Under the pieces are notes generated by a model that ran no database searches, had not been told where the DNA came from, and worked only from the letters and a program-made list of their open reading frames with translations. Below, piece after piece: positions 7,905 to 38,200 of a stretch of 64,000 bases of DNA. Location: positions 1 to 64,000 of the forward strand of contig JAHLWZ010000829.1 in NCBI GenBank assembly GCA_020536535.1. The letters are read 5' to 3'. This stretch comes from Pelomyxa schiedti. Its lineage: Eukaryota > Protista > Evosea. A program made the position numbers and the translations under genes. The stretch's first letter is position 1, and every line of letters starts with the position of its first letter.

Positions 7905-10900
7905 ATGGGGGAACTATGGCGATCCCAGAAAATGCAGTTGGTGCAACTGTTCATTCAAAAAGATGCTGCACACGACACCCTGGAGGAGCTGGGTCGTTTG
8001 GGGAAAATTCAATTCAGAGACGTGAGTCATCGTCTTTATTGCATGCAACCAACACAAATTTAGTTGAACTCCAGTGTCAATTCTTTCCAGCGAAATTTTG
8101 TCAATGAAATCAAACGTTGTGAGGAGATGGAAAGACAGCTGCGGTATCTTGAGGAACAGGTGCTTTTGCACACCTGCGCGTGTTAGTTTCACTTACACTT
8201 CCAACCTTTTTCCCTTCTTTTTAGGTACACCGTGAAAATGCAGAGATAGCACGAAAGGAACCAGAAAAGAAACTCTCTGACTACTCAGGGGTAGATGGCA
8301 AATTTTTTTCTGAAAAGTCGTTCGATTTAAATGCTCTGGAGGTATTGTGAATTTACTTTTCGTTTCCTAATATCTGGCAGGGCCATCTGTACACTTTAGA
8401 GCATGAGCTTCTAGAAATGAACTCACACAGAGAAACTATTGTCCGTGGGTTCAATGAACTTAACGAAATGAATTATGTCCTTGTGAAGGACTCTACTTTC
8501 TTCGATGAGGTTGAAAATTTTCTCTCCCTGTAATTCCAACTCCCCCTGCAGGGTCTTTCAAAACAAGGGCAACAACTGGAAGAAATTGACCACGAACGTG
8601 AAGGTTCCATTTTAGGGTTGGAATGTGTACAAATGACTTCTTTGTGACAACTTCATCAGATTCACCACTGGGGTGGTCCGTAAAGATGCTATTACCCCTT
8701 TTGAGCGTGTCCTTTGGCGCATCTTGAGAGGGAATATGATTTTCAAGGCCGCAGACATCGAAGAATTGATGTTAGATTCCGCAACAGTATGCTATTGGGA
8801 ATGGAATACATGAAACTAAAGTTACTGATGCAGGGAGAATTGGTGGAAAAAGTTGTTTTTATTATTGTGCACCAAGGAGAACAGGCCACCGCCAAAGTGA
8901 GGAAGATTTGCGAGTCCTTTGGGGCTCGATTATACAACTGCCCTGAGTCACCAAAACAGAGGCGGGAGTACAGTGAGCAATTGAAATCACGAATTGATGA
9001 GATTTCTCGCGTAGGCTAAAAGGAACAATCAACTCAATCACTCATTTTTCCAAGGTGCTTGCTCGGTCAAATGAGCATTCAAGACAGTTGTTAGCCGCTA
9101 TTGAAAAGCGAATCGGTGCCTGGGTTCTTCTTGTCAGTAAGGAAAAGGCAGTCTTTCATACAATGAATATGTTCAATTATGATGCTGGTCGGAAACTTCT
9201 TATTGCTGAGGGATGGTGCCCGGTTGTTTCAACAGACGATGTCCTTCAAGCTTTGAACCGTGCATCGGTAGGCTCCCTCTACACTCACACTATGTTTGGC
9301 ACTTAGAGTCTGATAGATTACAAGTGGTGCATCTGTGCCCTCTATCATGGGTGTCGTTAGAACGCGGGATGAGCCACCGACGTTCTATCCCACAAATAAA
9401 TTTACAGCCTGCACCCATGGCATTATTGAAGCTTATGGAGTTCAAAGATATGAAGAAGTAAATCCTGGTAACTAATAAGTTCCTTCGTTTTGGTAGCTCA
9501 CCCTTTTCAAGCTGTATTTTCGATAATCACGTTCCCATTTTTGTTTGCAATCATGTTTGGTGATGCAGGGCACGCATTAATCATGTTGTGTGCAGCCCTT
9601 GCCTTCATCTACTTTGAGAAACCTCTTTCAAAAATGAAACTCAATGACGTATCTACAATTTCTTGCAAGCGTAAACCTAACATTACCACAGATTTTAGAC
9701 ATGCTATTTGGAGGCCGCTATGTACTTCTGCTGATGGCAATATTTTCTATTTTCACTGGCCTCATCTATAATGATGTAAGTTTAACCACTGACTTCCTCC
9801 AGTCCGCTGCTAATGAAGTTAATTTTCTGTTCCTCTGGTTACAGGTTTTTGGTCTTGGAATTGACCTACTTGGGACTGCTTGGCATTATGACGAAGGGGC
9901 AAATTCATGGGTGAGGGGAGAAAGGATATACGAGTTCGGTATCGATCCTGTATGTCATGTGCCTTTGTCAGCAAGTTTAACATGACAAAAACAGTTGTGG
10001 AAGGGTTCCGAAAACGAACTTTATTTCTATAATTCCTTCAAAATGAAACTGTCTGTAATAACTGGTGTGATTCAGGTATATTTTATATCTTCTCTTCACT
10101 TTATAAATAATGCCAAAGATGACTCTCGGCATCATCATGGGGCTATTTAACCACTTGCATTTCAAAAAACCTCTGAATATCATTTGTGAATTTATTCCGC
10201 AAGTAGCCTGCCTCTTTTCCCTTTACGGTGTTTTGATTGTCTTCCAAGATGATTTTCATGTGTGGGTTATTTGGATACCTTGTAATGCTCATCTACCTCA
10301 AATGGGCGACCCCCCTACCGCATGAACCTTATTTGATTAACGTTCTAATTGACATGTTTCTCTCCTTTGGGAACCTACCAGCCGAGGAGAAAATTTACCC
10401 TGGCCAGGTACTCCTGACTTGTCACTGACTTGTTTAAAATCAAAGAAAACAGAACACAGTACAAATGATTTTAGCTGTGGCTGCTGTTATTTCAGTGTTT
10501 GTCATGCTGATACCAAAGCCCATAGTTCTGATGATACAACACAAGCGGGCTGTTGCAAAACTCGCCGCCACACACAAAAACTTAGAAGGCACTTCCCCAC
10601 CTGATCACAGCAGCAGTCACGACCATGAAGAAGAGGTATCCTCCCTCACCAACAACCAAATTCACCAATCATTCCATAGTTTGACTTTGCCGAAGCTGTT
10701 GTCCACCAAAGCATTCATACTATTGAATTTGTTTTGGGATGCATTTCCAACACTGCTTCCTACCTTCGGTTGTGGGCTCTCAGCTTAGCCCATGCAGGTG
10801 ATGACAAACCTTTTGCTCTTTCTTCTAACCACTGTTTAGAGTTGTCACTTGTCTTTTACGAGCAGGTACTACTCAACACCATGAAGTACAACTGGTTTGC

Positions 10901-11198
10901 AGTTTTTGTGGGATTCTCTGTGTGGGGTGGTGCCACCATTGCAGTTTTGTTGATCATGGAGGCACTGTCAGCCTTCCTGCATGCACTGAGGCTTCATTGG
11001 TACTAGTTTCACCTTCTTTCCTTATTGCTTACTTTTACTTTCTCAGGGTGGAGTTCCAGAATAAATTTTACAGTGCGCTTTTCCCTGCTCCTTTATCTTC
11101 ACTCATTTTTCTTCCTAGATGGTGACGGCTATGCCTTTGAGCCATTGGACTTCGGCAAATTAAAGAGCACCCTCCTTGAAGAACAGCTGGGTGATTGA
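7905..11198 (+). CDS. VPH1: V-type H+-ATPase V0 subunit a, many introns
   Basis: Motifs [73 protein letters not shown] and [16 protein letters not shown] are diagnostic of the family. Confidence 0.97.
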
Positions 11199-11261: not shown

Positions 11262-14200
11262 TCAATCTTTGTTTTGTTGTAACTGTATCTGCCTTGGTCT
11301 CTTCGGGTTTGGTTGGTTGTATTCTGGTGTTTTTGGTGGAAGGGCCTCGGGTCTGGGTCTGAGCCGGTGTAGGAGAGACGGATGAAGGTGAACTGGAGTT
11401 GATGGTGTTGTAGCTGAAGTAGTGGTGGTGTGGGAAGGGGTGGTACTTGCGGCGGCTGTGTGTGGGGAGGTGGGAAGGGTAGCGTGGGGTGAAAGGGGTA
11501 ACTTGGCCGGTGTGTTCGGTGTGTTTGCGGTTGTAATTGTTGCGGGTTTCTTGGCGAGTGTCAACTTGAGGGCTTGCAAGTCGGTTGAATTCTGACTGGG
11601 AAGGGTCAGTGGGGTGGTGGAATCCTAATTTATACACACATGCGTCGTTCGAGGATAGTAAGGCTTTTTTGATACGCCATTTTGTCGGAAAATGTTTTCA
11701 TGTACTTACTAAGGAGTATTCTAAATTCTTTTTCCTGTTGATGTTACATACTGAGCTGTGACGGGTTTCCCTACCTTCGCGCATCGGAAAATATCAAAAG
11801 TAGAATTTAATTGTTGGCACTGAGCCTTGGTATCCTGCAATTCCCCTTCCATGAGAACCAGCTTTGTTTTTGGACTGTCTCAAACTATCAGGAACAATGA
11901 AAACCTTAAAGAAAAAAGAAGGTACCACGAGTTTGAGGATATCTGTTGAGGAGCTTTATTAAAATTTAACAAAGAAGTTGAACTCAACTCACTTGTGCCA
12001 ACTCTTTTTCCAATTGTGTCACTCGCTCTGAAAGTCCATTTCTGTGCGAAATGAGGTGCTGAGGGTAACATTGGATCTACCTTTCTTCAACTGCTTCAGT
12101 TAATCCCGTGGTTAATGACAACAGTTTATTGTGTGCCGATTCGAGCTCCTTTTTCTGGCTGTCAACACGTTTGTCACTCTCATTAATTTCATTTTGGAGT
12201 AAGGCAGTTAATTCAGTCGCCTCAGAAAGTCTCTGGTCGAGTGACGCATTATTTTCCCTCAAACTATTCAGCTCTTCTTCCGCTCTGAGAGAGTTAAATA
12301 AAAGTAAAAAGAAAGAAGGTGAAGCCTTTGACAGATAGTAAGCTGTTTCCTCAAGGAAAGTGATGTCTCAGCAGCAACTTTCAGCTCTTCCCTTTGTCTT
12401 GCGTTGATCTACTACAATTAGGTAAATTGCGTCACGAGGTTATTACCTCCTCCAGTGAAGTAGCCTTCTTTGTGAGTTGAGTTATGTTGGAGACCAAAGA
12501 ACTGTTGTTGGCCGATTCAGCTTGGAGGCGTTGAAGGAGATCCCCAAGTTCCTTTTCCTTCGTAATAATAGCACTCTTGATTTTGTGAAGTTGTTCAGCT
12601 GCCTATGTTTTTGGTTTTTGATCAACAGAGTGAAGTATTTCATTTTTAATTCCAGGTTACCTCATTTTTCTGATTTTCGTAATTGGCAATTTTTACTTCA
12701 AGTCGCCTGCACTCGCATTCTTTTTCCTCAAACCCCGATTTGACAGATCCCAACATAGAAGACAAACTTTCTTTCTCGTGGATAAGGCTAGAGTTTTGGT
12801 TTTGCCACTCTTCCGCTTCCTGGTTCTTTCTCGCCACTTGTTCTGTGAGCAACTGTATTTGTGAATTAGATTGCTCTAACGCTGTTTCCAGCTCCGAAAT
12901 TCTGTCTTCAAGTCGAGAACCATTGTCTTCCAGGGCTAAATTTTTCTCAGTAGAGTTTCTATATTTCTTCTCCAAGTTCTCTAGTTTCTCTAGGCATGAA
13001 GTGTGATTGCAAGTGAGTAGCTTGAGGTCTTTCTCAGCACTTTCCTTCTGCCTCAGTATGTCAGAGATTTGTATTTCGAGATGTGCTTGGTGCGCTTTCA
13101 GATCCTCTGTGCTGGAAAGGTTCGCACCCTCTCTTTGTTTTGCAGCAGCTAAGTTGGCTTGGTACTGAGTAAGTTCTGCTTGGTACTGAGTAAGTTCGAG
13201 CTGTTGGGCAGACAACTTAGATTCTAACAGCCCCTTGGTTTTTTCACTGCTAATAAGCTCCTTTTCGATCATTGTGAGTCTTTCCTTGACACACTGAAGG
13301 TCATTCGTGGTCTCCCTCAACAATGTATTTTTAGCATTCAGTTCCAGTTTACTTGACTCGGTCAGTTGTGCCAGTCGAGCTTGTGCCTGCTTCAGATGCT
13401 TTTCCAGGGCTTCGCATTTTCGTTTTTCCTCTTCCATGCAATTCCTATTTTCTTCAAGTTGCTTCTTCACTGCCAGGAGCTCTTCTTGGGAAATACAGAG
13501 GTTCTCATTGACAGATACAAGTTGTTCCTGTGCGGACTCCTTCGACAATCTTTCTGAGTTCAATGAGTCCCGAGTTTGACCTAATTGCACTTCCATTTGC
13601 TTCAACTTGGTTTGTAATACGTCGGCCATGCTCTGGAAGAAGGTGAGCTGTTCTATTGTCTGCGTCAACTGTTCTTTGCAGGTATTATAGTCCTTACATT
13701 TGGTGGTGAGAGTATCAACTTGACACTGCATGTCATAAGACTCTTTTTCATGCAAGGCTTTTGACTCTTTGATTTCATTTTCTTTTTCTTGTAGTTTCGT
13801 GGCAAGATGGGAGATGCGGGTTTCCAAATTTGCTATGTGTTGACATAATTCTGTTTTTGTTTGTTCCAATGTTTGTTGAAGGGAAAGTAACTGTGTCATT
13901 TTATCAGCAGAGGCCTGCTTCTCAGATTGCATGTTAACTTCCATTTCTGCAATAGTTGCCTTAAGCTCTTCATTGCTCCTTCTGAGTTTTGAGTTGTCAT
14001 TCTTAATTTCACGCACAGTCGCAACCAAAACTTCGATGTCGTTGCCTGGAGCTAGCACACTGTGAGAGGAAGAACTTTCAATCCCAACACCGATTTTGAT
14101 AGCAGTGTGAAATTCCTGCTGGATTTGACTTTTCATCAAAGTGTTTATAGCAAGCTGTTCAGAATATTTGTTTTCAGTAATTGCCTTCAAGCTCTTTTCT

Positions 14201-17200
14201 TCTTCATAGCGTGAATCGAGAATGGTCAGTTGGTCTTGCAGTTCCTTGTTATGTTGCAAAAGAGTGAGGGTCCGAGCTTCTGTATCATTAAGGTTTTGTT
14301 TCACAATCTGCAAGTTGGCAGCCGACTCCTTGCACAAATTATCTGCCGTCACAAGCCGTTCCTCGAATTCTTGATTTTTTGATTGCAGGAGATGACACCT
14401 TGCCTCAACTTCCCCTAGCTCGGTTTTTTGCATTGATAGCTGCATTTCTTTTTCTTTCAGTTCACTTCCCATGTGAGTAACTTTGTCTTCCAAGGAATTT
14501 AGCTCAGACATGGCCACCTGTAACTGGGCGGTTTTCTCTTCCAATTGGGATTTGACAGGTGTGAGTTCTGATTCATGTGTTGTGATCAAGAGGTCAATGT
14601 TTCTGGTAAGACTCTCAATTTTAGTTTGCAACTGTAACTTTTGATGAGAAGAGAGAGCGAGGGATTTTTCTAACTCGTCAGCTCGTTTCTGCAACGTAGC
14701 CTTTTCTGCATTGGTAGTCTCTAGGGAGCTATGTATGGATTCGTTTGCTCTTTCATACTTCACTAAGTTTTCCGTTGCGACAGCCTCAGCGGATCGAACA
14801 TGATTCAATTTTATCTCTAATTCGTGGATATTTTCTACTAGTGATGCAGTCCTTGAAACGGAGGTGTCAAGTTTCTCATTTGTGTCATGTAATTGTTGTT
14901 GAAGAAGTAAAGATGTATTCATCTGAGTTGCATTTACCTCTGAGAGTCCAGACACCCGTTGCTCCATGCAGGATAATGCTTTCTTTCTCTCTGTCACCAA
15001 CTTCTTCAATTCACACTTCTTTGCTTTCAGTTTCTCCACCTGGTCTTGGAGAATGACTGTTGTTTCTATCTTAGCTTCAATATCCAGTTTTAGAGAGTGC
15101 ACTTCCAGGACCATTTTATCTACTCTACTTTGCAAAGCCTGCTCATTTTCTGAGGAGACCACAATCCTCCTCTCCAAGTTTTTGTTTCGGACTTTTTCTT
15201 GCTCCAATAACCCGATCAAGGAAACTCTCTCCTCTTCCAGAATCGAGGTCTGTTTCTGCAGAGTTTCGAGTGCAACAAGATTGCCTTGTAGTTTACTTAT
15301 CTCATCTCTCTGTTGTGCTATCTCCTTTTCCAAAGTACTCTCACACAACCTTTGCTCTTCAAGGTATTTTTGTAAGTCGCCGATCTGCTTCTGATAGACG
15401 GCAGCAGCATTACTTGATTTATTTTCTAGGTCACGGTACATTTGGTCCTGTAATTCCAGTTGCTTGTTTTTCTCGTTGTTCACTTGGGTTGCCTGAGAAA
15501 GACCAAGGGTAAGTGCTGTATTTTCCTGTAGCAACTGTATTTGCTGTGACTCATAGGATCTAATTTGAGCTTCCATGTTCTGGATCTTGCTCTGTTGTTG
15601 TGTTGAGAGTTCCTGCATGGAGTTTGCATCGGCCTGATAGTTTTCTAATCTTTCCATCCACTGGAGCTTTTGTTTCTCAAAAAGCGTTTCCTTCTCCTTA
15701 ATTGTATCTAGAAGAGTTGTGTTCTCCCGGGAGATTTTTATCTTCTCTTCATTACGTAGGTCAATCTCTTGCTTTCTCTCAAGTTCTCTTTTCTCGTAGT
15801 CTGAAATGGTTCTTTCCAGTTCAACGTTCTTTTGCTTGGCGCAAGCGAGTTGGTCCATGTATTTACCAACAGTATCCTTCAATTCTGATGTCTGCTGTAA
15901 TAAATCAGCAAATAGTTTGCTCTGTTCTTCAGTTGCGCAGTTTTTACTCATTTGGGCAAGTTGGGAATGAAGGATAGTGTTAGATTCCTGTAAGGCTAAA
16001 TTCTTTTCTTCAAGGCTTGTAAGTTTCTCTTGTGCTTGGTTATACCTTTCCTTTAAGGTAGTGAATTCTGATTGCATGAAACCACTTTCCTGCCGGTAGT
16101 TGTTGCACTGATGAGACAACTCTTCTGCTTTTACCTTGCCCTCTTCAACTTGACTTAATAGAACAGTGAGCTGGCTGGATTGCGAGACAATCGTTTGGTG
16201 TTGTTGTTCAATTTCCTGTGAAAACTGTTTTCTTTGCTTTTCATTTTCAGCAGTCATGTTCCCAATGAAAAGTTGAAGATCGCAATTACTTTGCTGTTGT
16301 TGTGTACACTTCTGATGAAGTGCTTGGTGTTGCTGCTCAAATTCCTGGCGCTCTTTATGGAATCTTTTTTCCATATCGGCATTTTCTTTCTTCAGCTCAG
16401 CGCATTGATCTTCCATGGAATGCAAGAGTGAGATACTTTGCTCTCTCTGCTCATCCATCATCTTCACTAGAGAGGCATGCTTCAGTTCGTCGTTAGCGAG
16501 TGACTGCTTCAGTCTTTCAACTTCAGAAACTTGCATTTGGTACCTTTCCTGAGACTCTTTCAGTTGCTGAAGTAAGTCACAGAGCTCCTTATTTTTATTT
16601 TCCTCCAGAGCTTTCAAGTGCTGGCTAAGTTCCAGGAGCTTCTTATCAGAGTACTCTTGTTGTGTGCGCAACTTGTTGGCAATTGTTGTATTCTCTTCCT
16701 TTAATTGGGCTTTCTCGGATTCCAATGTTTCACAGGTCTTACTCAACTGCGAATGTTTTGCCTGCAAGTTTGCATGTTGGGGCAGAAGGATCTCGTACTC
16801 ACTTTGTAGTTTCGAGTACTTTGTGCACTGCAGTTCCGAATCGGCGCACTTTTGTTTGAAGAGATGTAACTTGGATTTTATTTTTTCACAGTGCCTCTGT
16901 TGCATATCTGACTGTGATTTCAATTCAGACACAACTTTCTCACCCTGCTCTTGGATTGCACGAAGTCGTTCCTTGTACTCAAAGGTTTCTTGAGTGTACT
17001 GTGCTGTCAAAGTAGAGAGTTGACTCAGAAGTGATTCCTTTTGCTCTTGGAGAAGTGTGATACTTTCTTGCAGTTTTTGGTTCTGACCTTGCAGATCCTG
17101 AGCTCCAAGAATAAGTCCTTCACACTGTTGTTGAAGTGACGTAATCGAGGTTTTCAGGTTATTTATCTCTTCTTTCAAGAGAGAAATGGTGCTGCATTGC

Positions 17201-19703
17201 GATTCACTATGCTGTTTGGTAGATGTGAGCTCCTCTTTCAGAGTTGCATTTTGTTGTTGGAAGGACTGCAGTTGATTTTGGGTATCTTGCAATTCTGTGA
17301 CTTTTACCGTTGCACCTTCCAGTTCCTTCTGGAGCTGCTCGTTGTGAAGCCTTTCATCAGTCAGTGATTTTTTCATGCGTTCAAGTTCATACTGGCACTC
17401 CTGATGTTGCTGCTTAATATCTGCCAGTTCACTTATTTCAAGTTTCAATTTTGCATTGCCGCCTAACTCCGTTTGCAGTAGCAGCTTCTCTTTCTCTAAA
17501 TTTTTTTTCTCCTGTTGTGTACTTTGGATATCAGCTTCAAGTTCTGCTTTAATCTGTTCTACTGCTGCTAATTGCAGGGTTGCCTTTTCTGCTTCTTCTA
17601 CTAGGTGTTGAATTTCCTTTTGCTGTTCCTCAACTACAGCAGTCTTTTGGGTCAACTCCCTCTGTACTGAAGCAACCTCCTCCCTAGTTGTTTGAAGAAG
17701 TGTAGACAAAGTGGAATTGTCCATTTTAAGAGTAGTATGTAGTTTTTCAGCTTCATGATGTGTTTGTATCTGACGTTGAAGAGAATCCATTTGACTCTCC
17801 AATTCGATGTTTTTTGCTTCAGATTCACGCAGCCGAGTGGTGTGGCCAGAAACAAGAGTTCTCTCACAGTTCAGTTGTTCAGTCAGGTCATTTAATTTCT
17901 GGAGGAGTGCTTGCCTTTCGTTTTCGTGCATTTCTGTGAGAGAAGTAGAGTGTTCACTCATTTTAGATTGGCATGAGACCAAACTATCCTTTGTTTGCTG
18001 AAAACACAGTGCAATGTTTTCCACTTGTGTGAGAGCCTCATTTATGGAAATGCCACTGTTAGTTGCTTCAATCTGCAGATTACACTGTTGCCGGACTACA
18101 TTATATACTGCGTTCACGAGAGTGTCGTATTGTTCTCTCAATTGGGTGTTAGTGGTGTTAGTCACAGTGAGGTCATCAAGTCTGGTCTTCATTTCACAGC
18201 ATTTTCCTTCCAATTCGAGTATCTTCTCTTTCTCTTGTTTAATTTCTAGGTCACTTCGGTCTTTCTCCCTCTGTAACTCCTCAGCTTTCATCAGTGCTGC
18301 CTGTGATAGCTCAGCTAGCTTGGAGTTTTGGTCTTTACACTCGGACAGATCTTTTTTCAACTGCTCAGAGTCACTGTCGTGGGCAGGCATATCATTTTTG
18401 GCAAGCATGAGATTTTTTAGTTCTTTATCTTTGTGTGCAAGCAGTGCTGCTAACCTCAGGCAAGATTCATTTTTACACATGAAGGGTTCGACAGCTTCTG
18501 GTGCCTTGACAACAGTAGGGTCACTGTCCTTCTGGACAAGAGCATCTGTAACTTCCTTTATTCTGTAGTTAGCTGCTGGCTGGCAATGGGCACTTACCAC
18601 AGAAGAGTTGGATTTTGCATCATCCATTTGTTTCATTTTTTTGTCAAGTTGATCCACAATCGAATGAAGCAAGAACTGGAGTGTTATGTAAGTTAAAGAA
18701 CAATGTTTGCAACTAATGTGTATCAAGAAACATTTTCCTCTCTCATCTGTGTGCATAATAAGATTTTTCTTTTTTTAAGTAATTTATCAACCTTGGCGAC
18801 ATCCTGTGCCTCTTTCTCCTGTGCTTCCCTGGGAAAAAAATAAAATTAAATGATTAAGTACTTCCTGGTTCACAGACTCGTAACTAATCGAAATATTAAG
18901 CATCTTACTGTAAAGTTCTCAGCTCCTGTAGTCTGAAGGAAAGAGTGGTATTCAAAGCTGCTATCTCGTCATCTTTTGCTTTTCTGAAGAAATTCAATGA
19001 ACAGTCGAGGGAAAAAACACCTACAATATTTCAAGAGGGTTTTCCATCTGCCACATGCAAAGTTAAAATAGGCGATATAGATGTATGATACCGTGGAATT
19101 TGGCATAGGTTCATCGGTGATAAACGCTGGGGACACATGTGAGCCAATTGTTGCATCAAAGTCAAGAAAGGGTTGCTGAGGCTTGTTTTGTTAAATAGAG
19201 TCATACCAAAAAAAAACAAAAAAAAGTTGGCGTACTGGAGGAAGGAAGGCATCCCTATTTGAGGGAACAACATCAGGAGGTGCCATCACCTACCACCATT
19301 AGATCAGTGCAAAAATCACGAAGCGCCCGACTGGTACCCTTTTGGCGGCCTGCTTTCTAACTGTTGTCATCATGTGCGGAGGTCCTGGGTCGTCCGAGTG
19401 TGTTTTGTGCGACACATGCTGTACAGTAGCAGGCGCGATTGCTATTACAGTCCCCCCCTTTCCCGCTTTCCTCGCCGACGACGTGGTGCTGTCCAGCGCC
19501 CTGAGCGACGACGACGAAGAGCTGCTGCTGCTACTACTTGGATACATCGCCGCACTCGTTGGGTCATGTTGTTGTTGCTGGCGTTGCTTACTGCCACCAT
19601 CTTTCCTTGTTGAGTGTGCCTGAGATCCACTACGACCCCCACCACCACCAGATTTCATTGTCCTGTTCATAGCATCCTCACGTGTCTTCTTGAACCCCTT
19701 CAT
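11262..19703 (-). CDS. Giant coiled-coil protein (over 2,300 aa) with one exon of about 6.1 kb; golgin/centrosomal-type
   Basis: ORF 12646-18756 is 2036 aa of E/Q/K/L heptads. Flanking short exons continue the coiled coil (12077-12262 and 11640-11870) and give an S/T/P-rich tail. Probable start is MKGFKK at 19703; the 5' exon structure was not fully traced. Confidence 0.75.
13157..13197 (-). repeat. 21-bp tandem duplication encoding one duplicated heptad (ELTQYQA x2)
   Basis: gcttggtactgagtaagttc occurs twice with 21-nt period. Confidence 0.9.
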
Positions 19704-22074: not shown

Positions 22075-25000
22075 ATGAAGGGTCGTGGCGCTGTGGGCCG
22101 TGAGAGGTGCAAGGCCATGGGCATTGGTGGCAATCTCGAATACGCCATTGCCCTCAGCAGCGACGAAGGCGACGAGGAGTACCTGGAGGAAGAGGCAGAG
22201 GACGATGAGTGGTGCACGAGGGCTTCACTGTGCGAGGAGGCCGAGTCGCCCCCACGGGGCAGCGGCGACGACGACTACGGCGAGCCGGCGAGGGTGAAGG
22301 AGGAAGAAGACGAAGACGAAGACGAGGACGAGGACGAGGACGAGGAGAGGGAGGGGAATGGAGCCGATGGCGATGTCGCTGCTGCTGATGCTGGCGATGG
22401 TGGGGATCATTACCGCGATTATGGGCGCGAGGCAGACTGTGACCACACAAATCAAGACCAGGGCGAAACTGCTGCTGCTGATGATAATGATGATGCTGAT
22501 GATGATGATAAGGGGGAGAAAGATGGTGGCGATGTTGAGGAGAGGGGGGACGAGGCGAGTGAGTATTATGATTCTGATGAAGATGAAAGCTGTGACGAGG
22601 CCCAGCAAGAGGAAGCGGAAGAAGAAGAATATATTAATGATGATGATGAAGACCAAGTGGAGCACGGTGTTGATGACAACTCTGACATGGAAGAACATTG
22701 TACCGTGGATAGTGATGACGGCTGTGAGACTGCTGAGTACCTGTCTGATGAACTTGAATACCAAAGTGCAGGCAAGAGGCCCACATCAGCCAGCTCCTTT
22801 TTCTTTTTATTGATTGCCATCTTCTTCTTCTTCTTCTTCTTCTTTGCAATTACTCCTCTTCAGCAGAAGAAAGTGAAAACTCAAAGGATTCTCCCCTGCC
22901 CTCTGCACGCAGAGTTTCACCACACAAATGGGCAAAGAGGCCGGATGGCAATGGTCCTGAGGACTATAATATCGGTGAGTGGGTACAGTTTATTCCGGAC
23001 GACGAATATCAGTCTGAGCTCAACTACTTGGCAAGTGTACACAAATACAACTCAGTAGTTATTAACAACAAAACAAAAGCCTGGTCAACCCAATTCAAAA
23101 ATCACATTGTGGATAGGCCAGATTGTAAGAAAAAGTGAGACTGAAGTGAGAACTAGATGGCTTTGGGATCCTGCAGATACCTTTTCCCAGGATGTTGGGG
23201 GCATAGCACACTCTCGTGAGTTGTATTTGGGCCATGTGGATGACTCCAACTCATTCGATTGGAATGAGCAGATCTATGTTCAGAAGAAATGCTTTGTAAG
23301 GCCTCTGCAAGAGTTATTGTTTCCTGACTTAAATGGCAGGTGAAATATTTTTCTTCTTTGGAAGGAGAAGAATTTAAAAACTGGGTGAGGCTAGAGGATC
23401 ATTATTTCTATAGATTCGAGTATAACAGTAAAGAGTATTCTATCGATGAGAAGTCTTTTTTTTATTATTATTTTCACTAGGGTATGTTACACTGACCCAC
23501 GTGACCTTCAGAAGAGAGATATGACCCGTCCACCCCGGATTTTGGATACTTTCTGTGGGTGTGGTGGTCTCAGCTACGGCTTTGAGCAAGTGTGTACCTT
23601 TGTTTGTTTTTTGTTCTTGAAACCTTTCTGAGCTATTTATTGAAGGCAGGCTTTCCTGTGACTTGGGCTATTGAGAGGGATGCCCACGCCCTGAAATCGT
23701 ACATGAGGCAGCATGGTAACGTTATACCCATTCAAGGCTGTGTGAAGGAATTACTCAAATCACTAAAAAATCTGGCATCACTATCAAGCAGAGAAAGTGA
23801 GTATGCGTTTATTTCATTATCTAGTAAAATGTAAATAGAAGCCTGCCATGACAACGATAAGTTCAACACAAAGAACACAAAGGACAGCACAAAACCCGAC
23901 ACAAAAACAAACAATAAGTACAACACAAAACGCGGCACAAAGGACAGTACAAAGGGCAACTGGGAAATTAGCTCGGTTCAGGATATGCATTTCTCAGGGT
24001 CATCATTGTCATTTCTTGTTGAATGGAAAGGGAAGTGGGCCCCTTCATATAATGCCTGGAAAGCACTCGATGAGATAAATGCAGATAGATGCATCTCACA
24101 GTTCCTCCATTCACATTATCCGAACTTTTCCAATCGGAGAATGTTCAGACATACGAACTCCCACAAGGGCTTCCAGTTTTCTTCGGACCTTGCTGCCCTG
24201 CCTTGCGTACCAATCCCTGGAGAAGTTACAATGCTGATAGGAGGGCCACCTTGCCAAGGTGTCAGCAGATGCAATAGACTCAGGGAGCTAAAGCATCCTC
24301 TCAGAAATAAAGACAACCAAATGATGGCTGTTTTCCTGGACTACATTGCATTCCTAAAGCCTGAAATTGTTCTCTTTGAGAATGTTACTGGCGTTTTTGA
24401 TGTGAATGATGCCTTCTTGATGAGAATGCTGATAGCGAAGTTACTTAGTTTGGGTTATCAAGCCAGACTCGGTTTGCTAAATGCTTGTTGTTTTGGCACA
24501 CCACAAAGGAGATGGAGATGTTTTATTTGGGCTGCGAAAAGTGGTGTATTTCTACCCAAATTTCCTCCACCAAAATTCCAGATGCCACAACATGGACTAG
24601 CGTTGCGTAAAAAATTCCATCAGTAAGTGCACTCTCGCAATGAAAAACTTACCAAACTAGGTTTACAGTGATGCCGCACTACCGAAATTTAGCAGACCTT
24701 CCCCCGGCTTTAACTGTGTGGGACGCTATTTCAGGTTCTGATTATTTCTTTGGCACATTGCATTCTTCCACTGTTCCCAGACCTTCCAGAAAAAGTCGTA
24801 ATAAGTGGTGAAATTAAATATGCACACCACTGCTTATCCGCATATCAGAGAAGTCTGAGAATGCAGACTGATTCCACTGTTACGTTGCATTATAGCTTTT
24901 CCCCAAACAACCAGCAGGTTAGCATTCCGTTTTTATTGGTTCCTTCATCATTGTATCTAGAATTCTCTGGATGTAGCACTTGAACGGAATGGGGCACTTC

Positions 25001-25473
25001 CGGCGGGATATCAGAAATTCGAAAGACCACGTAAGAAAAGAAATAAGTATTCCTATAGGCACATTGGCTGGAAAGAACCCTTCTACACCATAACTGGACA
25101 ATACCAAGGTGTTTGTTTACATCCAAGTGTCCACAGAACTTTTTCAGTGAGGGAAGTGTGTACCCGTTTTTTTTTCATTCCTCCCAACTACCAACGAACT
25201 AGCAAACATCCATTCACTCATCCTTTCTTTCTCACTCTTTTATGTTTTTGCAGTGTGCCAGAGCACAAGGATTTCCAGACGATTACTACTTTTTTGGTGC
25301 TAAACGGGAAAAGTACAAGCAAATTGGGGTAACGCCCCTGCTTCGGGGGTTTGAAATTTGGCTTGGTTCTCACAAATCTTCCCTAGAATGCTGTGCCCGT
25401 GCCCTTGGCTCGTGCTTTGGGAGAAATGCTAACACCAGAAAATTTATGTCAGCTACCTGACAACCTATTCTAA
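22075..25473 (+). CDS. DNA (cytosine-5)-methyltransferase of chromomethylase architecture (acidic N-terminus, BAH, MTase with embedded chromodomain)
   Basis: Motif I ILDTFCGCGGLSYGF; motif IV GGPPCQG; motif VI FENV; motif VIII GTPQRRWR; motif IX-X ARAQGFPD and YKQIGNAVPVPLARALG. BAH-like exon 23107-23343 (RWLWDPADT...RELYL). Chromodomain-like WEISSVQD...FLVEWKGKWAPSYNAW lies between motifs I and IV. Confidence 0.9.
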
Positions 25474-29335: not shown

Positions 29336-32242
29336 CTACCAGCACTTCAAGCCATTGACAGAACACAGGAGTCCCTCTTTTGGAGCACCCAAGCCCTGAT
29401 GGACCAGTATCTCGAACGTTGTATTGTGAATACACCCACAAACCTCCTTCCATCTGGTTTTAAGCCTGGCTCCAAATAAAAAAAAGCAAAAAGTGTTTCC
29501 ATTGTGATTGTTCTGGTGAAAACAAAGAGGATGTGCATTTTCCATAGTGTTGTGGGCAGGATACAAAATTGTACAGTTTTTGGGTTCGTGGGTAAATCAG
29601 TCGTCTATTAGAAGGTATGATAGTATGTTGATAAGATCGTTGTGGAACAGTGCCGCCATGTGTGCACCTGGCAGAAAAAGTACAACATTAGATAATTCGA
29701 AGGCAGTGCCGGGGAAAGTACCTTCTCGTACAAGGTCCACAAGGTTGGAAGGTGTGACACAGGACATCTCTGCTGAGGCGTACTTGAGCTCCGTATCTAC
29801 GCGGAGGTACTTGATTCGGGGGTGAGAGGCAACCTCGGACATTACAAGGGAGGAGGCGTGGCTTGATGCCAGAAGAAGAGCGTTGATAAGAGGCTGAATC
29901 CACTGTACAACTCCCCACTTGTTAACCTTGGTGGATTCGAGTGTATCAGGGGGTGCAGTGCCCGTTCCGAGCGAAAGTACCACGTAGTGAGTAGCCTTGG
30001 GGTACTTCACCTTGGCGGAGCTTTTAAAAACATAATTAACGGGAATTCTAGAAAGTAAGCAACAGACACCTGTATGCAGCAAGCACAGGATTGTTGCATC
30101 CAATTCCACCGTCGATGTGTGTATGGCCAGTTATGGGGTCTTGTTGCGGTTTAAAGTATGTAGGGGCCGATGATGTCATGCGGCACAGTACAAGCTTTTC
30201 CATTTCGGCATCTTCTTCCTCCCAACTTTTCCAAAATTTCATTTGGTTCATAGTCATGTCAAATGAAGTGATAAGAACATTGGTGGTCACGTTTCCAAAC
30301 TTGTGGTGATTCGGTCCCATAAGTTCAAGCATCTTAGTCTCCAAAGGTTGGTGCTTAAACTGTGGTCCAAGTAGTACACTACCTCTAGGAGTAAACACGA
30401 GAGGCCCACAATCCGTGTACAAGGAAAGTGCATCAGCAGCACTGAGGTGTGGATCCGGGTGTGTAAGCATACAGGCAAGCAGTCCTCCCGTACTTGTACC
30501 AGCAATAATGTCAAACAAATCGCTGATGCGTTTCCCTGTGTAATATTCTATCAAGGCCAGAATAATCCCAGGAATAATTCCTCGAATTCCACCTCCGTCA
30601 ATGGAAAGAATGCGAACAGTATTGCGCCGTTCCCAAGGACATGAACCCAAAGTAGGCTTTTGACAACGGGTTAGTGCACAATAAAGGTTACAAATTAGAA
30701 GAGCACCAGAGGATCCCATGTGATGCGAATATGTAATAGTCCTTTCCGCTTATGCTTAAGTAGCAACCATTCATCAACATCAACTCCAGGTTCAGCGGTA
30801 AATTCACACTCTCTGGATTAGGAAAAAAAGTGGGTCAAGATAATAATTTCTGGGATGCAAACCCTTCAAAATCATCCTGGACCCCGAGTGGATAATTTTT
30901 GGTGAGAAGAACAAGGGTAGAACAGAAGGTACCGCGGAAACTGTATCTCGATCCCACACTTTAAATCTCAAGTCCATGGTCTTTGCTGGGTGGCAGAACA
31001 GTTGAAACTCGGTGTTCCATACAGGCTCAAGTGTTTTCGGAATTACGTGAGTCATTAGTCCTCTGTCTGACCGGGATTTCTATCTGGAATTTACATTCTT
31101 AATCTATTTTGAGTGACAATACCTGGAAACTTGGAATAAGAACCTCAGTGTATCTATTAGAAAGATGGTTTTGGTGAATAATTAATAAATTGCAACAAGC
31201 AAAAACTCAACGGGTCGGAAGTTCCTGTTGTGTCCATGGGTACCAGGTCAGATGCTTCCACAATTGTGAGGGTAAATAGGCACGGCTTACGAGGTGTTGG
31301 TGGAAGAAGTACAGGCTCAGGTGTTATGTGGGTCACAGCTGCAGCGACAGAAGCAACAGCCGTTACGGCATCAGTGGAAGCAATGGCCGCTGAAGCCACA
31401 AAAGCGGCCATTGTATCAAACTTCGAGGCTTTTAAATGATCTCTCCTTCTTTTATTGGTTAAAGCCTCTACAGCCGTCGCTGTAGCAGATGCCGTCATTG
31501 AAGACGAGGCACAAGCAGCAAGCAATTCTGCTTCCAAGAGCGATAGTGGTGAATCAGATGGAGGAAGAGATGATTCTGTGGTAGACAACCCGGACGGTTT
31601 CATTTCTGGGGAGCCTGCCTTTTTCTCCCTGCCCAAATTAGGTGAAGACGCAGACCGTTTATCACGCTGCTTGGAAAGATGACTATGAGGAGTTTTGTGT
31701 TTTGTGGGCTCCTCCGGTGTGGGTTGTAGGGTGGAATCATCTTGGGAGCTTCTTTGCTCCGCAGGAATTTTTTCAGTGCCCTCGCCCGCGTTGTCACCCG
31801 GTTCCTTTTCCTTTGTTTCCAGGGCTTGGTCACTTTCTGGCGGTGCGGATTTGTCTCTGTGCTTCTCCTTCCTATCCTTGCTTCTTTTGTGCGAATGCCC
31901 GCGCGACCTTTCACGCCCAGTGCCCTGCGTTTCCTCCGGTTGCGGACTCGCATCAGCGGTTGTACTCGCGGTTGTAGCTGCAGCTGTCGTGGTGGGCGCG
32001 CCGGCGCCGTCAATTTGGGAGCTGCCACCGGTTGCCTTTTCCTTTTCCTCGGTTGGTGCGGCCGACTCGCTCTGGTCCCGTTGCTCTGCGGCAGGTTCGC
32101 CCTCCTTGGCCCGCGAGCGGTGCCTGTGGCGGTGACGTTCGCGCGGGGTATCTGTCGAGGCCTCGCCGGTGGAGGAAGAAGGATCCGCAACAGGTGCGAC
32201 GTTATTCACGGCGACCTTGTTGTCGTTGTCGTCACCGTCCAT
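29336..32242 (-). CDS. C2-domain plus patatin-like phospholipase with a long low-complexity N-terminus
   Basis: C2 motifs [27 protein letters not shown] and FKVWDRD; patatin motifs DGGGIRG, GTSTG (nucleophile) and DGG. Start may be 32242 or a nearby upstream ATG; 3' end approximate. Confidence 0.85.
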
Positions 32243-33505
32243 CGCGAGTCCGTTCGGCCGCAGGTGGTTATTGTTCTTCCTAGGAATTAACGAAAGTTCG
32301 CTTTTTTTCGTACCCCTTTCACATGTTGACATCTCCGGTATCCTTCCAGGGAACACACAACCCGAAAAGGGTTCTTAGTCGATGACGAAAGTCAGCAACA
32401 ACTTTATGGTTTAGTGGTCCATGTTAGGGGTCGTCGTCAACACCAAGAAGCAATAAGAAAAGAATCGTCGAAAGCAAGCAATGTGCCGTGTTCGGCGGTT
32501 CACCAGCCTCCTCCTCCCATACTGGCGTGCTGCCCCGCGCACAAGAGAGAACGACGCACACACGAAACACCGAAACACACCCGTCTTGCCGTAAAGGAAA
32601 AAAAAAGAAATTGGGCACAAGTGAGGGATAAAAAAAAGATTGTTCTCTTCACAATTACATCCCATGTCACCAAGCCCTGCAACAAACAAAAACCAACCCA
32701 GAATTCTCTTGTGAGCCATAGATGGACCAAAACTGTTAGTACCAGGGGTTGGCATCTGTTATAATGGGTGCCAACACACAACACACTCATCTGTTGTTAT
32801 TATTTATTTTGTGTGTGATTGCATCCGTTATAGTGGGTGTAACCATCTTGAATAAATATGGGAAAGAAAAAACAAAGAAAAAAAAGAAAGAAAAAACCTA
32901 CCAGAAGAGCCAAAGCAGGTTCCACGTCGTCCATGGCGGCAGCACCATCCCCATCGTCGTCTAGTTCCCTTTGTTGTTCGTGTATTTTTGGTTGTGGCTT
33001 CTCCGCATCGGACCTGAATGCCTAGGCATTTAGAGGAAGGAAAAATTGACGTGGCGGTTATTTTCCTGCAGTTGCTCCCAAGAATAGACACTGGATATTG
33101 ATCGGTCTGCTCTAGTTTCTTGGTCAGACCAGTGCTCCCAGAGGAGAGTTTTTGGGATTTGCCCAACCTCTGAGAGCCCGTTGGATGAGAAATAGCCCTC
33201 AGGAAGACCTCACCTGAACCAGTCAGATGATCAAATCACATCAATTCTTTGCAGGACATTCTTCATCCTAATCCGTGCGGGAGCCCGCGTCCTATCCTAA
33301 TCTCGAGTAATCTTCCAGCAGAACCATTCAAATTTCATGAAGTCATTATTGAATTGTGATTTATGAAGAAAGAAGGGTTTTTCTCCCCCAAATTCTTTGT
33401 TATTTTTTTATTTTGGTTATCACCAAAAAAAACAACTCAGAGAACACCCCACTATTTCCATACGTTCACAGGTGGCACCACAATACGTTGTCCAAGCAAG
33501 AGTCC

Positions 33506-34819
33506 TTATGATGACTTTTCCTTTGGAACAATGTTCTTGGCTTGGAGTTCCTTGTCGGATGTGTTGACAGCGGCGTGGAGTGTTGGCTTGGCCGAAACTC
33601 TGTAGGCACCGACAACAACAGCGTGATCTCTCTCGTAGGGCTCCAGTGAGATTTGTTCCAGTGGTTTGAATTGCTCTTGTTGGAGTTTCTTCACCTCATT
33701 GGCAAATACCAAATCAGCTGGGGCAGTAGAGTCGATGCAATTGGCCTGGGTGTATGGTCACGTGCAAAGCCAATTAAAACAGGAACACCAACCTTGATGG
33801 AGATGATGAAATGTCCACCGTTCTTCAAGAAGTTGTGGGCGTTAATAGCAAGGATACGAGCTTGGTCGGGTTGGGCTACATCCTCAAAGATGCAATCAAC
33901 CATGTCAACCAACATGCGGTACTAAACACTCTTGAGTTTGAAGAAAAACAACCAAAAAAAAAACCTTGTGTGGATGGCGGGCATCCTCAATGATGGGGAT
34001 AATGTTGGTTCTCTTCTTGGCTACATTGATAAGATCTCGGCCTGATCTGTGAGAGAATTCGACGGCATAAACTACTCCGGTCTAGTATTACGTAAGGCGT
34101 TAAAAGGTAGAGGCAAGGTGTATCATACCGGACCAACAATATCTGACACGTGGCTTACAGTTGTTCCGGAGGCAGCACCAAGGTAAAGTACCTTGGAGCC
34201 GATGGTGACCCATGTATTATCAATACCACCAATAATGGCAGCAGCTAACTTGGATCGGAAGGGATTCCAGACTCTGTATTCCTTCTTCTCTCCATTCTAC
34301 ATAAAGTGAGATTACTGTTTGTACAGAAAGCATAAGACAACACGACACAAAACCCCCGACAAAAACAAAAACAAAAACGAAATCGAAAAGCACCTCCTCG
34401 ACGGCAATACGCTTCTCTCCATAGACTGACTCCCCAGGGACAAGGTTGAGCGTGACGAGGTTGTCTTCCTTCCCCTTGGCGATGTAAATTCCCTCGTGCC
34501 TGTGCTTTACAATCACCACCTTCAAACCGCCGCCGCCCCTCCCTCCCCTGCCCCCGCGGCCACCTCTTCCGCCGCGGCCGCCGCCTCCTCGCCCGCCTCC
34601 GCGTCCTCCCCTCCCTCCGCGGTCACCGCCGCCTCCTCTGCCGCCAAATCCTCCCCTGCCGCCGCCAAATCCTCCTCTGCCGCCGCGAGGTGCTCCGCGT
34701 CCTGTGAAAAAGGGAAAAAAAGGGGGGGAAAAAAACCGACGTAAGTGAGGGCGAACAGCGTGGATGGTGTGTGGGTGTATGCGTGGCTGCAACCCGGAAA
34801 GACGACACTCACCGCTCAT
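33506..34819 (-). CDS. FBL: Fibrillarin (rRNA 2'-O-methyltransferase, Nop1)
   Basis: RGG-rich GAR domain, [52 protein letters not shown] and [13 protein letters not shown]. Confidence 0.97.
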
Positions 34820-35231: not shown

Positions 35232-38200
35232 ATGTTCGGACAGGAGGAAGACCCCGTGGGTGAAGTTTGGAGTTGGGGTTCAAACGTGACCTTCTCAACC
35301 GGCCATTTCGAGGTTGACAATGCCGGGGAATTGCTGCCAGAACAGGTTGGTGCCGCCTCACTTGTTTCTAAACAAAAAAAGAGTTTCTAAAGCACAGCCT
35401 GGTTTTGTTTTGGTTTTGCTTTGTTTTTTTAGAGGAAATTATACAGTACACCAAGGTATGTTACCAGTTTGGAAGGGGACTCTATTATAATGGTTGCATG
35501 TGGCCAAGGTAACAGCTCAATTTGATTGTATGATCCCACTTTTAAAACCCAAAAGGCCACACTATGGCACTAACCACTGGTCTTCAACTTTGGGCATGGG
35601 GGAAAAATGATTTTGGGCAACTTGGTCTTGGTGACAAGGCATCCTGCTCTTTGATGTTCTAATTGTAGTTTTAACTTTAACTCAAACACACACAAAAAAA
35701 GAGACTACAAATTGTCCCCAGACGAGTTACATCTCTCACAGAACAAATTTCTATGGCGGCATGTGGCTTGAACCACACAATTGCACTTACCACAACAGGC
35801 AATGTGTATACCTGGGGTGAAGGTCGTTTTGGTCGATTGGGTCATGGACCCACAATGTTGGATGACCTACCATCACCACTTCAGGTAGCTTCCTTGCCAG
35901 CTGCAAAAGGAGTATTTGCTGGAGGCAACCAGACAGCAATTATTACGGAAGATGGAACGCTTTTCACGTGGGGGTGGAATGGAAATGGGTAATGGCCCTT
36001 CACCAGTGTAACCCATCTTAATTTGTATCAGGCAACTAGGATTGGGGTAGGACTCTGTTTCATTTGTTAAAACGTAAACATAACTTTTATGAGAAAGAAT
36101 GCACGTCACCTCATAGATTCACAATTATTTTTTTCTAGGTTTACAAATGACATCCTTTCTGGTGTACCTATACCAACTCAAGTCGGTGAAACAAACCGGC
36201 GTCTAATTGACTACATTGATCGGCACGCTATCCGAGAAGGTGAAGGTATGCAAAAATAGCTTTTAGCATTGAAACCTTTATCACTGACAATAGCAACCCG
36301 CCTTCACTAGTATCTCGAATTGGAAATCAATGGGAACTTCTAATTAGTACTGTTCGCTCTACTCTTTTGGGGCTCCAAGATAGAGCTGCACGGGAGCTCA
36401 GTAGACTTTTTCAAAGGACTGACAATGCAGTAAAGGAAGAACAAATCAAGTTAATTCAAGATGTTGCAAAGAATGGTGGTCGTGACGAGTCAACATCACG
36501 GTTGCTTGAACTTTTGGTTCAGGCTTTCCATGAGCTTGACTTGTACAAACTTGTAGAGAGTGAAGGTCGGGGGACTGATGTATGAGCCTGGGAGTTTTGC
36601 TCTTCCCTAATTTTGCTCAGACAGCATTTGTAAAAATAGCCATTGGTGAAAGACACATGGTTGGTATTACACCAGAGAAAAAATTATACACTTGGGGTGA
36701 GTTGCTCTTTCGCCGTTCTTTACAATGACTTACATGACAAAGGCTGCAACGGCCATGGGCAACTAGGAAGACTTACTGAGGGCAACCGAGATTCATTGAA
36801 ACCAGCCCAAATAGAGAACTTTCCTGAAGTTACTGATGTGCGATTAAATGCTCTTTTGCCAGCAACCCATATGCATTAGGTGTCGTGTGGAATGGCACAC
36901 ACTGTTGCCATTTCTAATGGCGTTGTTTTTTCTTGGGGACACAAAGAAGCTGGTAGGCTTGGGTATGCTCTTCAGGCACTTTCTTTCAGTACTCATGCAA
37001 CCTCAATCAGCTACGATATAACAAGCATAACTGATGAGAGAAAACCTCGGCAAGTCCCTGGGGTTACGGGCGCCGCCATTCAAGTTAGCTGTGGAGAGCA
37101 TCACACAGCTGTTTTATGTGAGGATCATACCGTCATGACGTGGTTGGTCGCTTGTCCCATTCTTTTTTGAAACTAACACCCCAAATTAAGGGGTTTTAAT
37201 AACTCTGGCCAGTGCGGGTATACCATCTTCAAACTATTTTCAACTTTCATTAACATTCACAGGTACACAGTAGCCGCTGAAGAGGAATCAAGACCAGTTG
37301 GCCATCCTCCCACCACAATCGCCAGATTTTCTGGAATATCTTTCTTGAGCTCAGGTTGTGCGCATATCGTGACAATTGTCCACACCTCCGATACCTTCTG
37401 CCAGTTATGCAGAGATGGTGATTTAAAGGTAGCAACTCTGGTCCTTATGGCCTTCATTGAATCTGTTGTCTAGGCAATTAAAGAACGAGTACATAATGGC
37501 ACTCAGCCAGCCCACGAGGTTGACAGAAGAGGAAGAACAGGTTCGAGGGTAGTTCCCTCAGGACCCTTCTAAGTGACTACGTTACCACTAGGGTTCTTCT
37601 ATGCAATTGAATTTGGGAGGATGCCCGTTATCAATTATTTACTTGATGTTGGCTGCCAAGTAGACCCCACTGACAAGGAAGGATTCACCCCACTCCATAT
37701 CGCACTTACTTCTGGGCAAAAAGATTGTGTCAAGTATAATTTCTCATTTTTATCCCTCTGCCTGACTTTTCTCCAAAGGCTTCTTCTATCTCGTAAATGC
37801 AATTTGAAGAAGAAGACTATTCGTGATGGTCATACCCCACTTCACATTGCAGCCATATCTAAGAACGTGGACATGGTTCAGTTACTGGTGATTAATGGAT
37901 CGCCTCTTGACATTGTAGATTCAAGTGGCAAAACTGCTCTTGATTACTTGGATCCAAACACTGCTCAAAATATACGAAGTCTCATAGGGAGGTGCGACAT
38001 TGCCGTACTGTGTGCCCCACAAGAGCAAACCTTTGCTCAAAAGTTGGCGACAAGCATAAGAAACTATGACCTGAGTGTCTGGGCCGATGATACTCCTGCC
38101 AAAGAGGTTATGGGTGGCGAGGATTCTGTCTTGTACACAAGTATTATGCACAGGCTAACCAATTCTCGTGCTGTTGTCTGGGTATTACATGCTCATCAAA

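Follow-up and report, generated by a model that had tools for sequence, protein, structure and literature searches.

The window analysed here is a stretch of 64,000 nucleotides (nt) from contig JAHLWZ010000829.1, deposited as Pelomyxa schiedti, and on its forward strand (22075-25473) it carries a gene for a DNA methyltransferase (MTase) that resembles the plant chromomethylases (CMTs). Our reading, to which we assign a probability of about 70%, is that this is an intact, single-copy nuclear archamoebid gene for a C5 MTase of the DNMT1/CMT superfamily, in which a BAH domain and a chromodomain inserted into the catalytic domain would act as histone readers. The gene has 12 exons and 11 GT-AG introns and encodes about 928 amino acids (aa) with no internal stop. 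The original prediction, made from the letters of the sequence, had proposed a BAH followed by an MTase domain with a chromodomain between motifs I and IV. The order BAH, motifs I-III, chromodomain and motifs IV-X was recovered by Pfam, by locally built profiles, by AlphaFold2, by Foldseek and by alignment; the positions it gave for motif I, the insert, the catalytic TGC and motifs VI, VIII, IX and X were all correct. The architecture is colinear with that of ZMET2/CMT3. The gene represents an undescribed archamoebal family of BAH-chromo-MTase proteins, with a target recognition domain (TRD) that is not of the CMT type.

The gene is intact and all catalytic motifs I-X are present. The motifs by which a C5 MTase is recognised were found as motif I (ILDTFCGCGGLSYGF, 23539-23583), motif IV (GGPPCQGVS, 24240-24266, with PCQ, the catalytic Cys codon TGC at 24252-24254 and an invariant G135-Q139), motif VI (FENVTG, 24375-24392, ENV at 24378-24386), motif VIII (QRRWRCFIWA, 24504-24533, QRRWRC at 24504-24521) and, each interrupted by an intron, motif IX (RTFSVRECARAQGFPD, 25135-25280) and motif X (GNAVPVPLARALG, 25326-25422). 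Pfam DNA_methylase matched exon 7 at 1.5e-21, with further matches on exons 5 and 11. When exon 7 was searched against PDB sequences, ZMET2 scored 125.7 bits, followed by Arabidopsis MET1 (83), animal DNMT1 (68), DIM2 (56) and HaeIII (32), and a fold match gave 217-228 aligned columns for ZMET2, over chromodomain and MTase, as compared to about 125 for MET1/DNMT1. Of the solved structures ZMET2 is the closest relative, whether sequence or fold is compared.

The insert (23958-24107; aa 519-568) lies between motifs III and IV, and thus in the interval between motifs I and IV where a chromomethylase carries its chromodomain. It occupies the loop that extends from the helix after motif III to the PCQ strand, as in plant CMT3/ZMET2, and HMMER aligned it to the chromodomain of ZMET2, immediately ahead of motif IV, a colinearity that was also seen in the fold. 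Exons 6 and 7 join in frame at the entry to the insert, as had been predicted, through a 42-nt intron (GTGAGT...AG), and both Pelomyxa paralogs have an intron at the identical position. A chromodomain profile made from relatives, with the window protein excluded, scored 19.2 bits at aa 521-568, and Pfam Chromo exceeded its cut-off in two relatives from the clade, P0051 and P0004, as well as in three top-ranked environmental hits (P0007, P0008 and P0012) that lie outside the tree sampling. AlphaFold2, run on exon 7 with 38 homologue segments, placed three strands and a C-terminal helix in the insert at a predicted local distance difference test (pLDDT) of 81-92, and the insert alone was modelled at pLDDT 86. 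In a Foldseek comparison of this model with the PDB the top 50 matches were all chromodomains (template modelling score 0.66-0.81; root-mean-square deviation 0.8-3.8 Å, mostly about 1 Å), comprising CBX1/2/3/4/5/6/7/8, HP1, Polycomb, MPP8, SUV39H1, Rhino and CDYL2. The models thus show a predicted chromodomain fold for the insert, in line with the original prediction.

The amoebal chromodomains are without the plant 'CYGDP…' hairpin insertion, and the domain is followed by a linker of 38 aa, as compared to about 9 aa in plants. The content of the loop varies in the clade: P0004, an intronless environmental eukaryotic homologue (L005 1331-3472, Logan SRR24962750 contig), has two tandem chromodomains, and in the Mastigella protein P0147 the loop is 50 aa long and no chromodomain could be detected in it.

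The earlier claim of a BAH-like exon also held. Local BAH profiles, prepared either without the window protein or without all amoebal proteins, gave 27-34 bits at aa 299-392, and in the orthologue from Mastigamoeba Pfam BAH cleared its cut-off with 31.5 bits. By these local profiles the protein has the single N-terminal BAH of a chromomethylase, and by profile score the window BAH resembles that of DNMT1 (19 bits) more than that of CMT (8-9 bits). A DNMT1/MET1 enzyme would have an RFTS domain and two BAHs; here the 230-aa first exon had no Pfam match and one BAH region was found. Pfam and PDB matches of single BAH exons to streptavidin and PorL were judged to be chance. In the P. schiedti locus L001 (JAHLWZ010000151.1) positions 10806-10901, called as an intron in KAH3766369.1, are 72% identical (tblastx) to window exon 4. 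Judged from this sequence, an exon equivalent to the C-terminal BAH part has probably been missed in that GenBank model, which would explain why no BAH is detected there.

Both reader signals were compared with chance by running the Chromo and BAH profiles, made without the window protein, on all 1595 six-frame open reading frame (ORF) fragments of the window. The insert was the sole match of the chromodomain profile (E 6.7e-6) and 23059-23340 the single match of the BAH profile (E 2.7e-5), so both signals exceed chance; the profile scan of these fragments turned up no further DNMT, chromodomain or BAH. Both domains carry aromatic residues at their cage positions. In the insert the candidate cage is W/W/W, formed by the tryptophans of NWEI, of VEWKG, which aligns to ZMET2 W466, and of KGKW, which aligns to Y469 with one residue inserted; the numbers W466 and Y469 were confirmed against the PDB chain, and the counterpart of the W in NWEI is presumably ZMET2 F441. 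The BAH cage positions are likewise W/W/W, in LWIGQI and RWLW, aligned to residues that we take to be ZMET2 Y203 and W224/F226 and that were reportedly described by Du et al. in 2012. The presence of aromatic cages in both reader domains makes a coupling to methyl-lysine plausible.

The nearest relatives of the protein are amoebal. An exhaustive HMMER scan of 1.84 billion representative proteins with exon 7 returned two P. schiedti proteins as best hits (56% and 49% identity), followed by Mastigamoeba balamuthi and then by plant CMTs, which are 37-41% identical to the window protein; the window's own protein was absent from the collection searched. One of the Pelomyxa proteins, KAH3766369.1 (P0001), reaches 59% identity across the catalytic-domain alignment and is named 'CMT-type DNA-methyltransferase' in GenBank, and the other, KAH3744754.1, is named 'Chromo domain/shadow'. 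When a Pelomyxa protein was the query in the large collection, mostly bacterial MTases were returned. Further members of the clade are Mastigamoeba balamuthi EP00727_P000925, the Mastigella eilhardi transcript EP01105_P023328 and several metagenomic proteins, whose contigs carry eukaryotic genes (Nic96, a mitochondrial carrier and a Sac1-like gene). The window gene has 8-9 intron positions in common with the P. schiedti genes and introns of similar size, its G+C content is 0.45 (0.46-0.47 in the Pelomyxa genes), and the catalytic exons are about 70% identical in nucleotides. P. schiedti genes reportedly have 7.4 introns on average (PMC8887013). Closest hits, common introns, intron sizes, G+C content and nucleotide identity together make an archamoebid, Pelomyxa-like source very likely and exclude plant contamination. 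The original prediction had also drawn on housekeeping neighbours for an amoebozoan origin; that origin stands, although the evidence for it is the gene itself and not its neighbours, since no taxonomic signal was obtained from the two neighbours considered, the actin-like and the patatin-like ORF. Grouping and gene structure both place the protein in an archamoebal BAH-chromo-MTase clade, and our results show that this clade is distinct and includes Pelomyxa, Mastigamoeba, Mastigella and some environmental eukaryotes.

Phylogeny of the catalytic domain minus the insert, which had been proposed as a check, supported a kinship with CMTs in one sampling and spoke against it in another. In the full tree (89 sequences, 412 columns, LG+C20+F+G4) the amoebal clade lay outside a CMT+DNMT1 grouping (98/88) and joined (99/95) a set of long-branch MTases, in part bacterial, that carry no reader domains, and forcing it together with the CMTs cost 13.3 log-likelihood units (approximately unbiased (AU) test, p 0.024). 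The core motifs alone gave the same topology with weak support. For the reduced tree nine long-branch rows were removed, at least one of which is a tandem multi-MTase; given this row and the branch lengths of 1.1-2.4, we judge the grouping of these nine rows with the amoebal clade to be mainly long-branch attraction. The reduced tree recovered the amoebal (97/94), CMT (100/100) and DNMT1 (100/100) clades and the bacterial outgroup (99/98), and the window protein grouped with the two Pelomyxa proteins at 100/99. Here the amoebal clade was sister to the CMTs (82/64), but neither amoebal+DNMT1 (p 0.34) nor CMT+DNMT1 (p 0.41) was rejected. In both trees the window protein fell outside the Viridiplantae CMT clade (100/100), whose named members are green plants and algae (Bryopsis, Ostreobium, Picocystis, Haematococcus, Sanguina, Chlorokybus and angiosperms) with one exception, and it follows that the gene was not acquired recently from any of the green lineages sampled. 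The exception is in a 90% cluster (P0044) that has Picocystis salinarum and Diacronema lutheri (a haptophyte) labels together, which could be contamination or the 'CMT-like haptophyte' signal of the literature. A grass CMT gene (L006), which has 19 introns of 70-3212 nt, has no intron at exactly the position of any of the 11 in the window gene. The nearest is 2 nt off and in another phase, and the comparison is uninformative at such distance.

Several observations weigh against the reading of the gene as a CMT-like enzyme with working histone readers. The proposed HMMER check bore out the MTase domain, but Pfam Chromo on the insert (E 0.0016, 18.8 bits) stayed under its cut-off of 25.1 bits, and Pfam BAH, run on the separate exons, gave no match above cut-off. 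The AlphaFold2 fold is biased toward a chromodomain, since the input alignments were mostly of known CMT chromodomains. Both P. schiedti paralogs lack aromatic residues at positions 1 and 3 of the chromodomain cage, which Mastigamoeba keeps, and it may therefore be that not every member of the family reads methyl-lysine. The TRD falls about 50 aa short of that of CMT or DNMT1, and the segment with the plant KGANFRDL…LVPNYAMSF stretch is missing.

The protein therefore has the embedded chromodomain and the single BAH of a chromomethylase but no TRD of the CMT/DNMT1 type, and of the earlier identification as a chromomethylase the architecture stands, whereas membership of the CMT family is not established. 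The parallel with CMT3 that had been noted downstream of the insert is likewise partial. In segment-wise scoring motifs IV-VIII alone favoured the CMT profile (151 bits, as compared to 130 for DNMT1), whereas the N part, the TRD and motifs IX-X scored higher against DNMT1 or bacterial profiles than against CMT; for the TRD the values were 28 bits for CMT, 43 for DNMT1 and 35 for the bacterial profile. The span from motif IV to motif X is 317 aa; CMTs have about 365, DNMT1/MET1 about 345 and small bacterial enzymes 313-325. With a TRD this short, and different from those of CMT and DNMT1, neither CHG specificity nor any other methylated sequence context is inferable from homology.

How this architecture came about can be explained in more than one way. 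The explanation that we place marginally ahead, although below even odds, is convergence, where an archamoebal enzyme of the DNMT1 superfamily that already had a BAH gained a chromodomain independently in the same permissive loop. This would account for a phylogenetic signal that is unresolved or conflicting, for the differences from CMT in TRD, linkers and chromodomain subtype, and for the variable loop content within the clade, and it has a parallel in the diatom DNMT4s, which gained an N-terminal chromodomain independently (PMC9998398). However, an identical insertion site, a BAH-first order and a core most like that of CMT are much to ascribe to chance. Insertion in the same loop and the same domain order are also what a true chromomethylase would have, on a scenario with one origin of the BAH-chromo-MTase arrangement in which the archamoebal clade and the Viridiplantae CMTs are sisters, through ancient vertical descent or an ancient transfer between eukaryotes. 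The advantage of about 20 bits over the DNMT1 profile in motifs IV-VIII, the lead of ZMET2 far ahead of MET1/DNMT1 in the PDB search and the sister position in the reduced tree speak for such a single origin. We still place it slightly below convergence, as it is opposed by the position outside CMT+DNMT1 and the AU result in the full tree and by reduced-tree alternatives that were not rejected, by the profile scores of the N part, TRD and motifs IX-X, by a BAH closer to that of DNMT1, by chromodomains without the plant hairpin and by the lack of introns at positions identical to those of the grass gene. These data are compatible with either one origin or two for the CMT-like architecture.

A third explanation, that the catalytic core is of bacterial origin and was later fused to eukaryotic BAH and chromo readers, is improbable. 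It draws on the full-tree grouping with reader-less MTases, some of which are named Paraburkholderia, Oscillochloris or a cyanobacterial metagenome-assembled genome, on a motif IV-X span within the bacterial range, and on profile scores, as the bacterial profile was highest for the N part and second-highest for motifs IX-X. But the branches concerned are very long, long-branch attraction is likely, and without those rows the position beside CMT was restored. Furthermore, ZMET2, MET1, DNMT1 and DIM2 beat HaeIII and HhaI by 25-95 bits in the PDB search, and a BAH just ahead of motif I is a trait of the DNMT1 family. We also give little credence to the idea that the readers are degenerate and serve as structural or regulatory spacers, or that the gene is heading to loss as in Entamoeba, a parasitic relative of the free-living archamoebae that is known to retain only DNMT2. 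Sub-threshold Pfam scores for both domains, the degenerate cage in both P. schiedti paralogs and the Mastigella protein without a detectable chromodomain are in line with such decay, but in the window protein every cage position of either domain is aromatic, the chromodomain is modelled with confidence and the catalytic motifs are intact over 12 exons. Contamination from a plant or green alga, or a recent plant transfer, to which the rank of plant CMTs just behind the archamoebal hits might point, can be dismissed, because the best hits are from Pelomyxa and Mastigamoeba, the introns agree with those of Pelomyxa in position and in size (38-58 nt) while those of the grass gene are elsewhere, and the Viridiplantae CMT clade excludes the window protein.

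Taken together, the evidence favours an intact archamoebid MTase with a BAH and an embedded chromodomain, and by analogy this enzyme probably works as CMT3 does. The aromatic cages of the chromodomain and BAH would bind a methylated lysine of the H3 tail (H3K9me-like), and this binding would tether, and possibly activate, the MTase at heterochromatin or transposons. DNA methylation would then follow the histone mark, on the plant analogy most plausibly on repeats. Only tentatively do we extend this to the proposal that Archamoebae run a plant-like DNA methylation guided by an H3K9me-type mark that the enzyme reads with its own chromodomain and BAH, with a design that either predates the split of Amorphea and Diaphoretickes or arose twice in the same loop.

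To our knowledge no methylome has been reported for free-living archamoebae, and the family predicts 5-methylcytosine in their genomes. The short TRD, unlike that of CMT, makes the sequence specificity directly testable. Chromomethylases are commonly viewed as an invention of the green lineage, and the archamoebal family implies that histone-mark reading and DNA methylation were joined in one polypeptide earlier or more widely than this, or that the combination evolved twice. Either way, the control that reader domains exert on a DNA MTase can be studied here in a second and independent system. Our literature search on CMTs in Archamoebae or Amoebozoa found no description of the family, and the literature retrieved had no mention of DNMTs of Pelomyxa or Mastigamoeba. 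Recent DNMT surveys across eukaryotes regard CMT as plant-specific and its chromodomain as something that was added in the plant enzymes (PMC12344493; PMC10538959), and mention only chromodomain-less 'CMT-like' enzymes of haptophytes (PMC12344493; PMC10538959; PMC9998398). The novelty is lowered by the fact that the Pelomyxa orthologue already has the automatic product name 'CMT-type DNA-methyltransferase' in GenBank.

The exon model was made from three-frame translations and GT/AG sites and was then refined against two P. schiedti loci. All exons are on the forward strand, and introns 1-11 measure, in order, 98, 43, 44, 46, 56, 42, 38, 46, 43, 98 and 58 nt. Exon 1 (22075-22765) holds the start codon and an acidic, low-complexity N-terminus, with 48% Asp and Glu over aa 30-235; the start codon and the exon 1/2 junction are based on the reading frame alone and have no homology backing. 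The acidic stretch of about 200 aa (22162-22765) has runs of GAA/GAC/GAG repeats and no counterpart of such length in the Pelomyxa proteins. Exon 2 (22864-23036) encodes a linker and the first BAH strands, with YNIGEWVQF from 22965. For exon 3 (23080-23295), the BAH core, the start was revised to 23080, giving a 43-nt intron and restoring LWIGQIV (23107-23124), which matches ILWVGQII in the Pelomyxa protein; RWLW is at 23155-23166, and the exon is backed by tblastx to L001, by alignment and by profile. Exon 4 (23340-23434) encodes the C-terminal BAH part (…HYFYRFEYNSKE). Its donor at 23435, with a 46-nt intron, best fits the structure of the homologues and the intron size, although 23420 and 23453 are likewise in frame. 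The 82-nt intron 2 and 28-nt intron 4 of the initial exon model were dropped after comparison with the Pelomyxa loci.

In the catalytic part, exon 5 (23481-23589) encodes a linker followed by motif I, where Pfam DNA_methylase positions 2-19 align, and exon 6 (23646-23796) motifs II-III (WAIERD, 23664-23681) and the helix ahead of the insertion loop. Exon 7 (23839-24622) contains a K/T/N-rich linker, the chromodomain, a second linker and motifs IV-VIII, as supported by Pfam, PDB and AlphaFold2. The TRD starts in exon 8 (24661-24734; …LTVWDAIS), continues through exon 9 (24781-24917; DLPEKVV…SFSPNNQQ) and ends in exon 10 (24961-25155), which also has the first half of motif IX (…HRTFSVRE). Exon 11 (25254-25328) carries the second half, CARAQGFPDDYYFFG through QIG, at Pfam DNA_methylase positions 283-307, and exon 12 (25387-25473) motif X NAVPVPLARALG, the C-terminus and the TAA stop codon, which ends at 25473.

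Elsewhere in the window an Rfam search gave no match. An uninterrupted ORF of 2036 aa (12646-18756, reverse strand) encodes a Q/E/L-rich coiled-coil with no Pfam match; it is unusual amid genes with many short introns and coincides with a strong AT skew. A fibrillarin gene with an RGG/GAR (glycine- and arginine-rich) N-terminus and at least five short exons separated by small introns lies at about 33650-34700 (reverse strand). The patatin-like phospholipase ORF (29597-30719, reverse strand) has bacterial proteins as its closest named relatives (41-46% identity), some of them phospholipases activated by cyclic GMP-AMP in CBASS (cyclic-oligonucleotide-based anti-phage signalling), and no close eukaryotic match was found for it; on this sequence basis it may be a bacterial gene transferred into the amoeba. 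The divergent actin-like ORF at 47128-47973 (forward strand) matches Pfam Actin at 1e-68 and is only about 40% identical to any actin/Arp in the collection, with matches to actins from across the whole tree. Ankyrin-repeat ORFs are at 37573-38205, 44289-44933 and 48725-50566 (forward strand), and in L002 the P. schiedti paralog is immediately followed by an ankyrin-repeat gene. A low-complexity, S/A/K-rich ORF (31157-32356, reverse strand) has an end that resembles the start of a C2 domain.

Among known systems, CMT3/ZMET2 (and CMT2) share with the window protein the single N-terminal BAH, a chromodomain ahead of motif IV, motifs I-X and aromatic cages. They differ by a longer TRD, the plant hairpin in the chromodomain and the short linker after it, and their hosts are plants, whereas the host here is an anaerobic amoebozoan; the window protein has a long acidic N-terminus, and the window BAH is no closer to that of CMT than to that of DNMT1. 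In CMT3/ZMET2 the contact of the chromodomain with H3K9me2 targets the enzyme to chromatin and the contact of the BAH with H3K9me2 activates it (PMC11315935). The P. schiedti paralogs, Mastigamoeba and Mastigella belong to the same clade as the window protein, and the Pelomyxa genes have the same architecture and the 8-9 common introns; compared with the Pelomyxa paralogs, the window protein has all three aromatic cage positions, a longer linker and a longer N-terminus. DNMT1/MET1 are of the same superfamily, have BAH domains beside the catalytic domain, and their profiles score slightly better with motifs IX-X and the TRD of the window protein, but the window protein lacks RFTS and CXXC, has one BAH in place of two, carries a chromodomain in the loop that is about 30 aa long in DNMT1, and has a much shorter TRD. 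Fungal DIM-2 is likewise a BAH-containing enzyme of the DNMT1 superfamily, and its BAH1 reads H3K9me3 in a ZMET2-like manner and couples DNA methylation to H3K9me (PMC11315935). It is a more distant match (56 bits), and unlike the window protein DIM-2 has RFTS and two BAHs and depends on recruited HP1 rather than on a chromodomain of its own. The diatom DNMT4s also join a chromodomain to a C5 MTase outside plants (PMC9998398), although they belong to another DNMT family, have no BAH and carry the chromodomain N-terminally instead of embedded in the catalytic domain.

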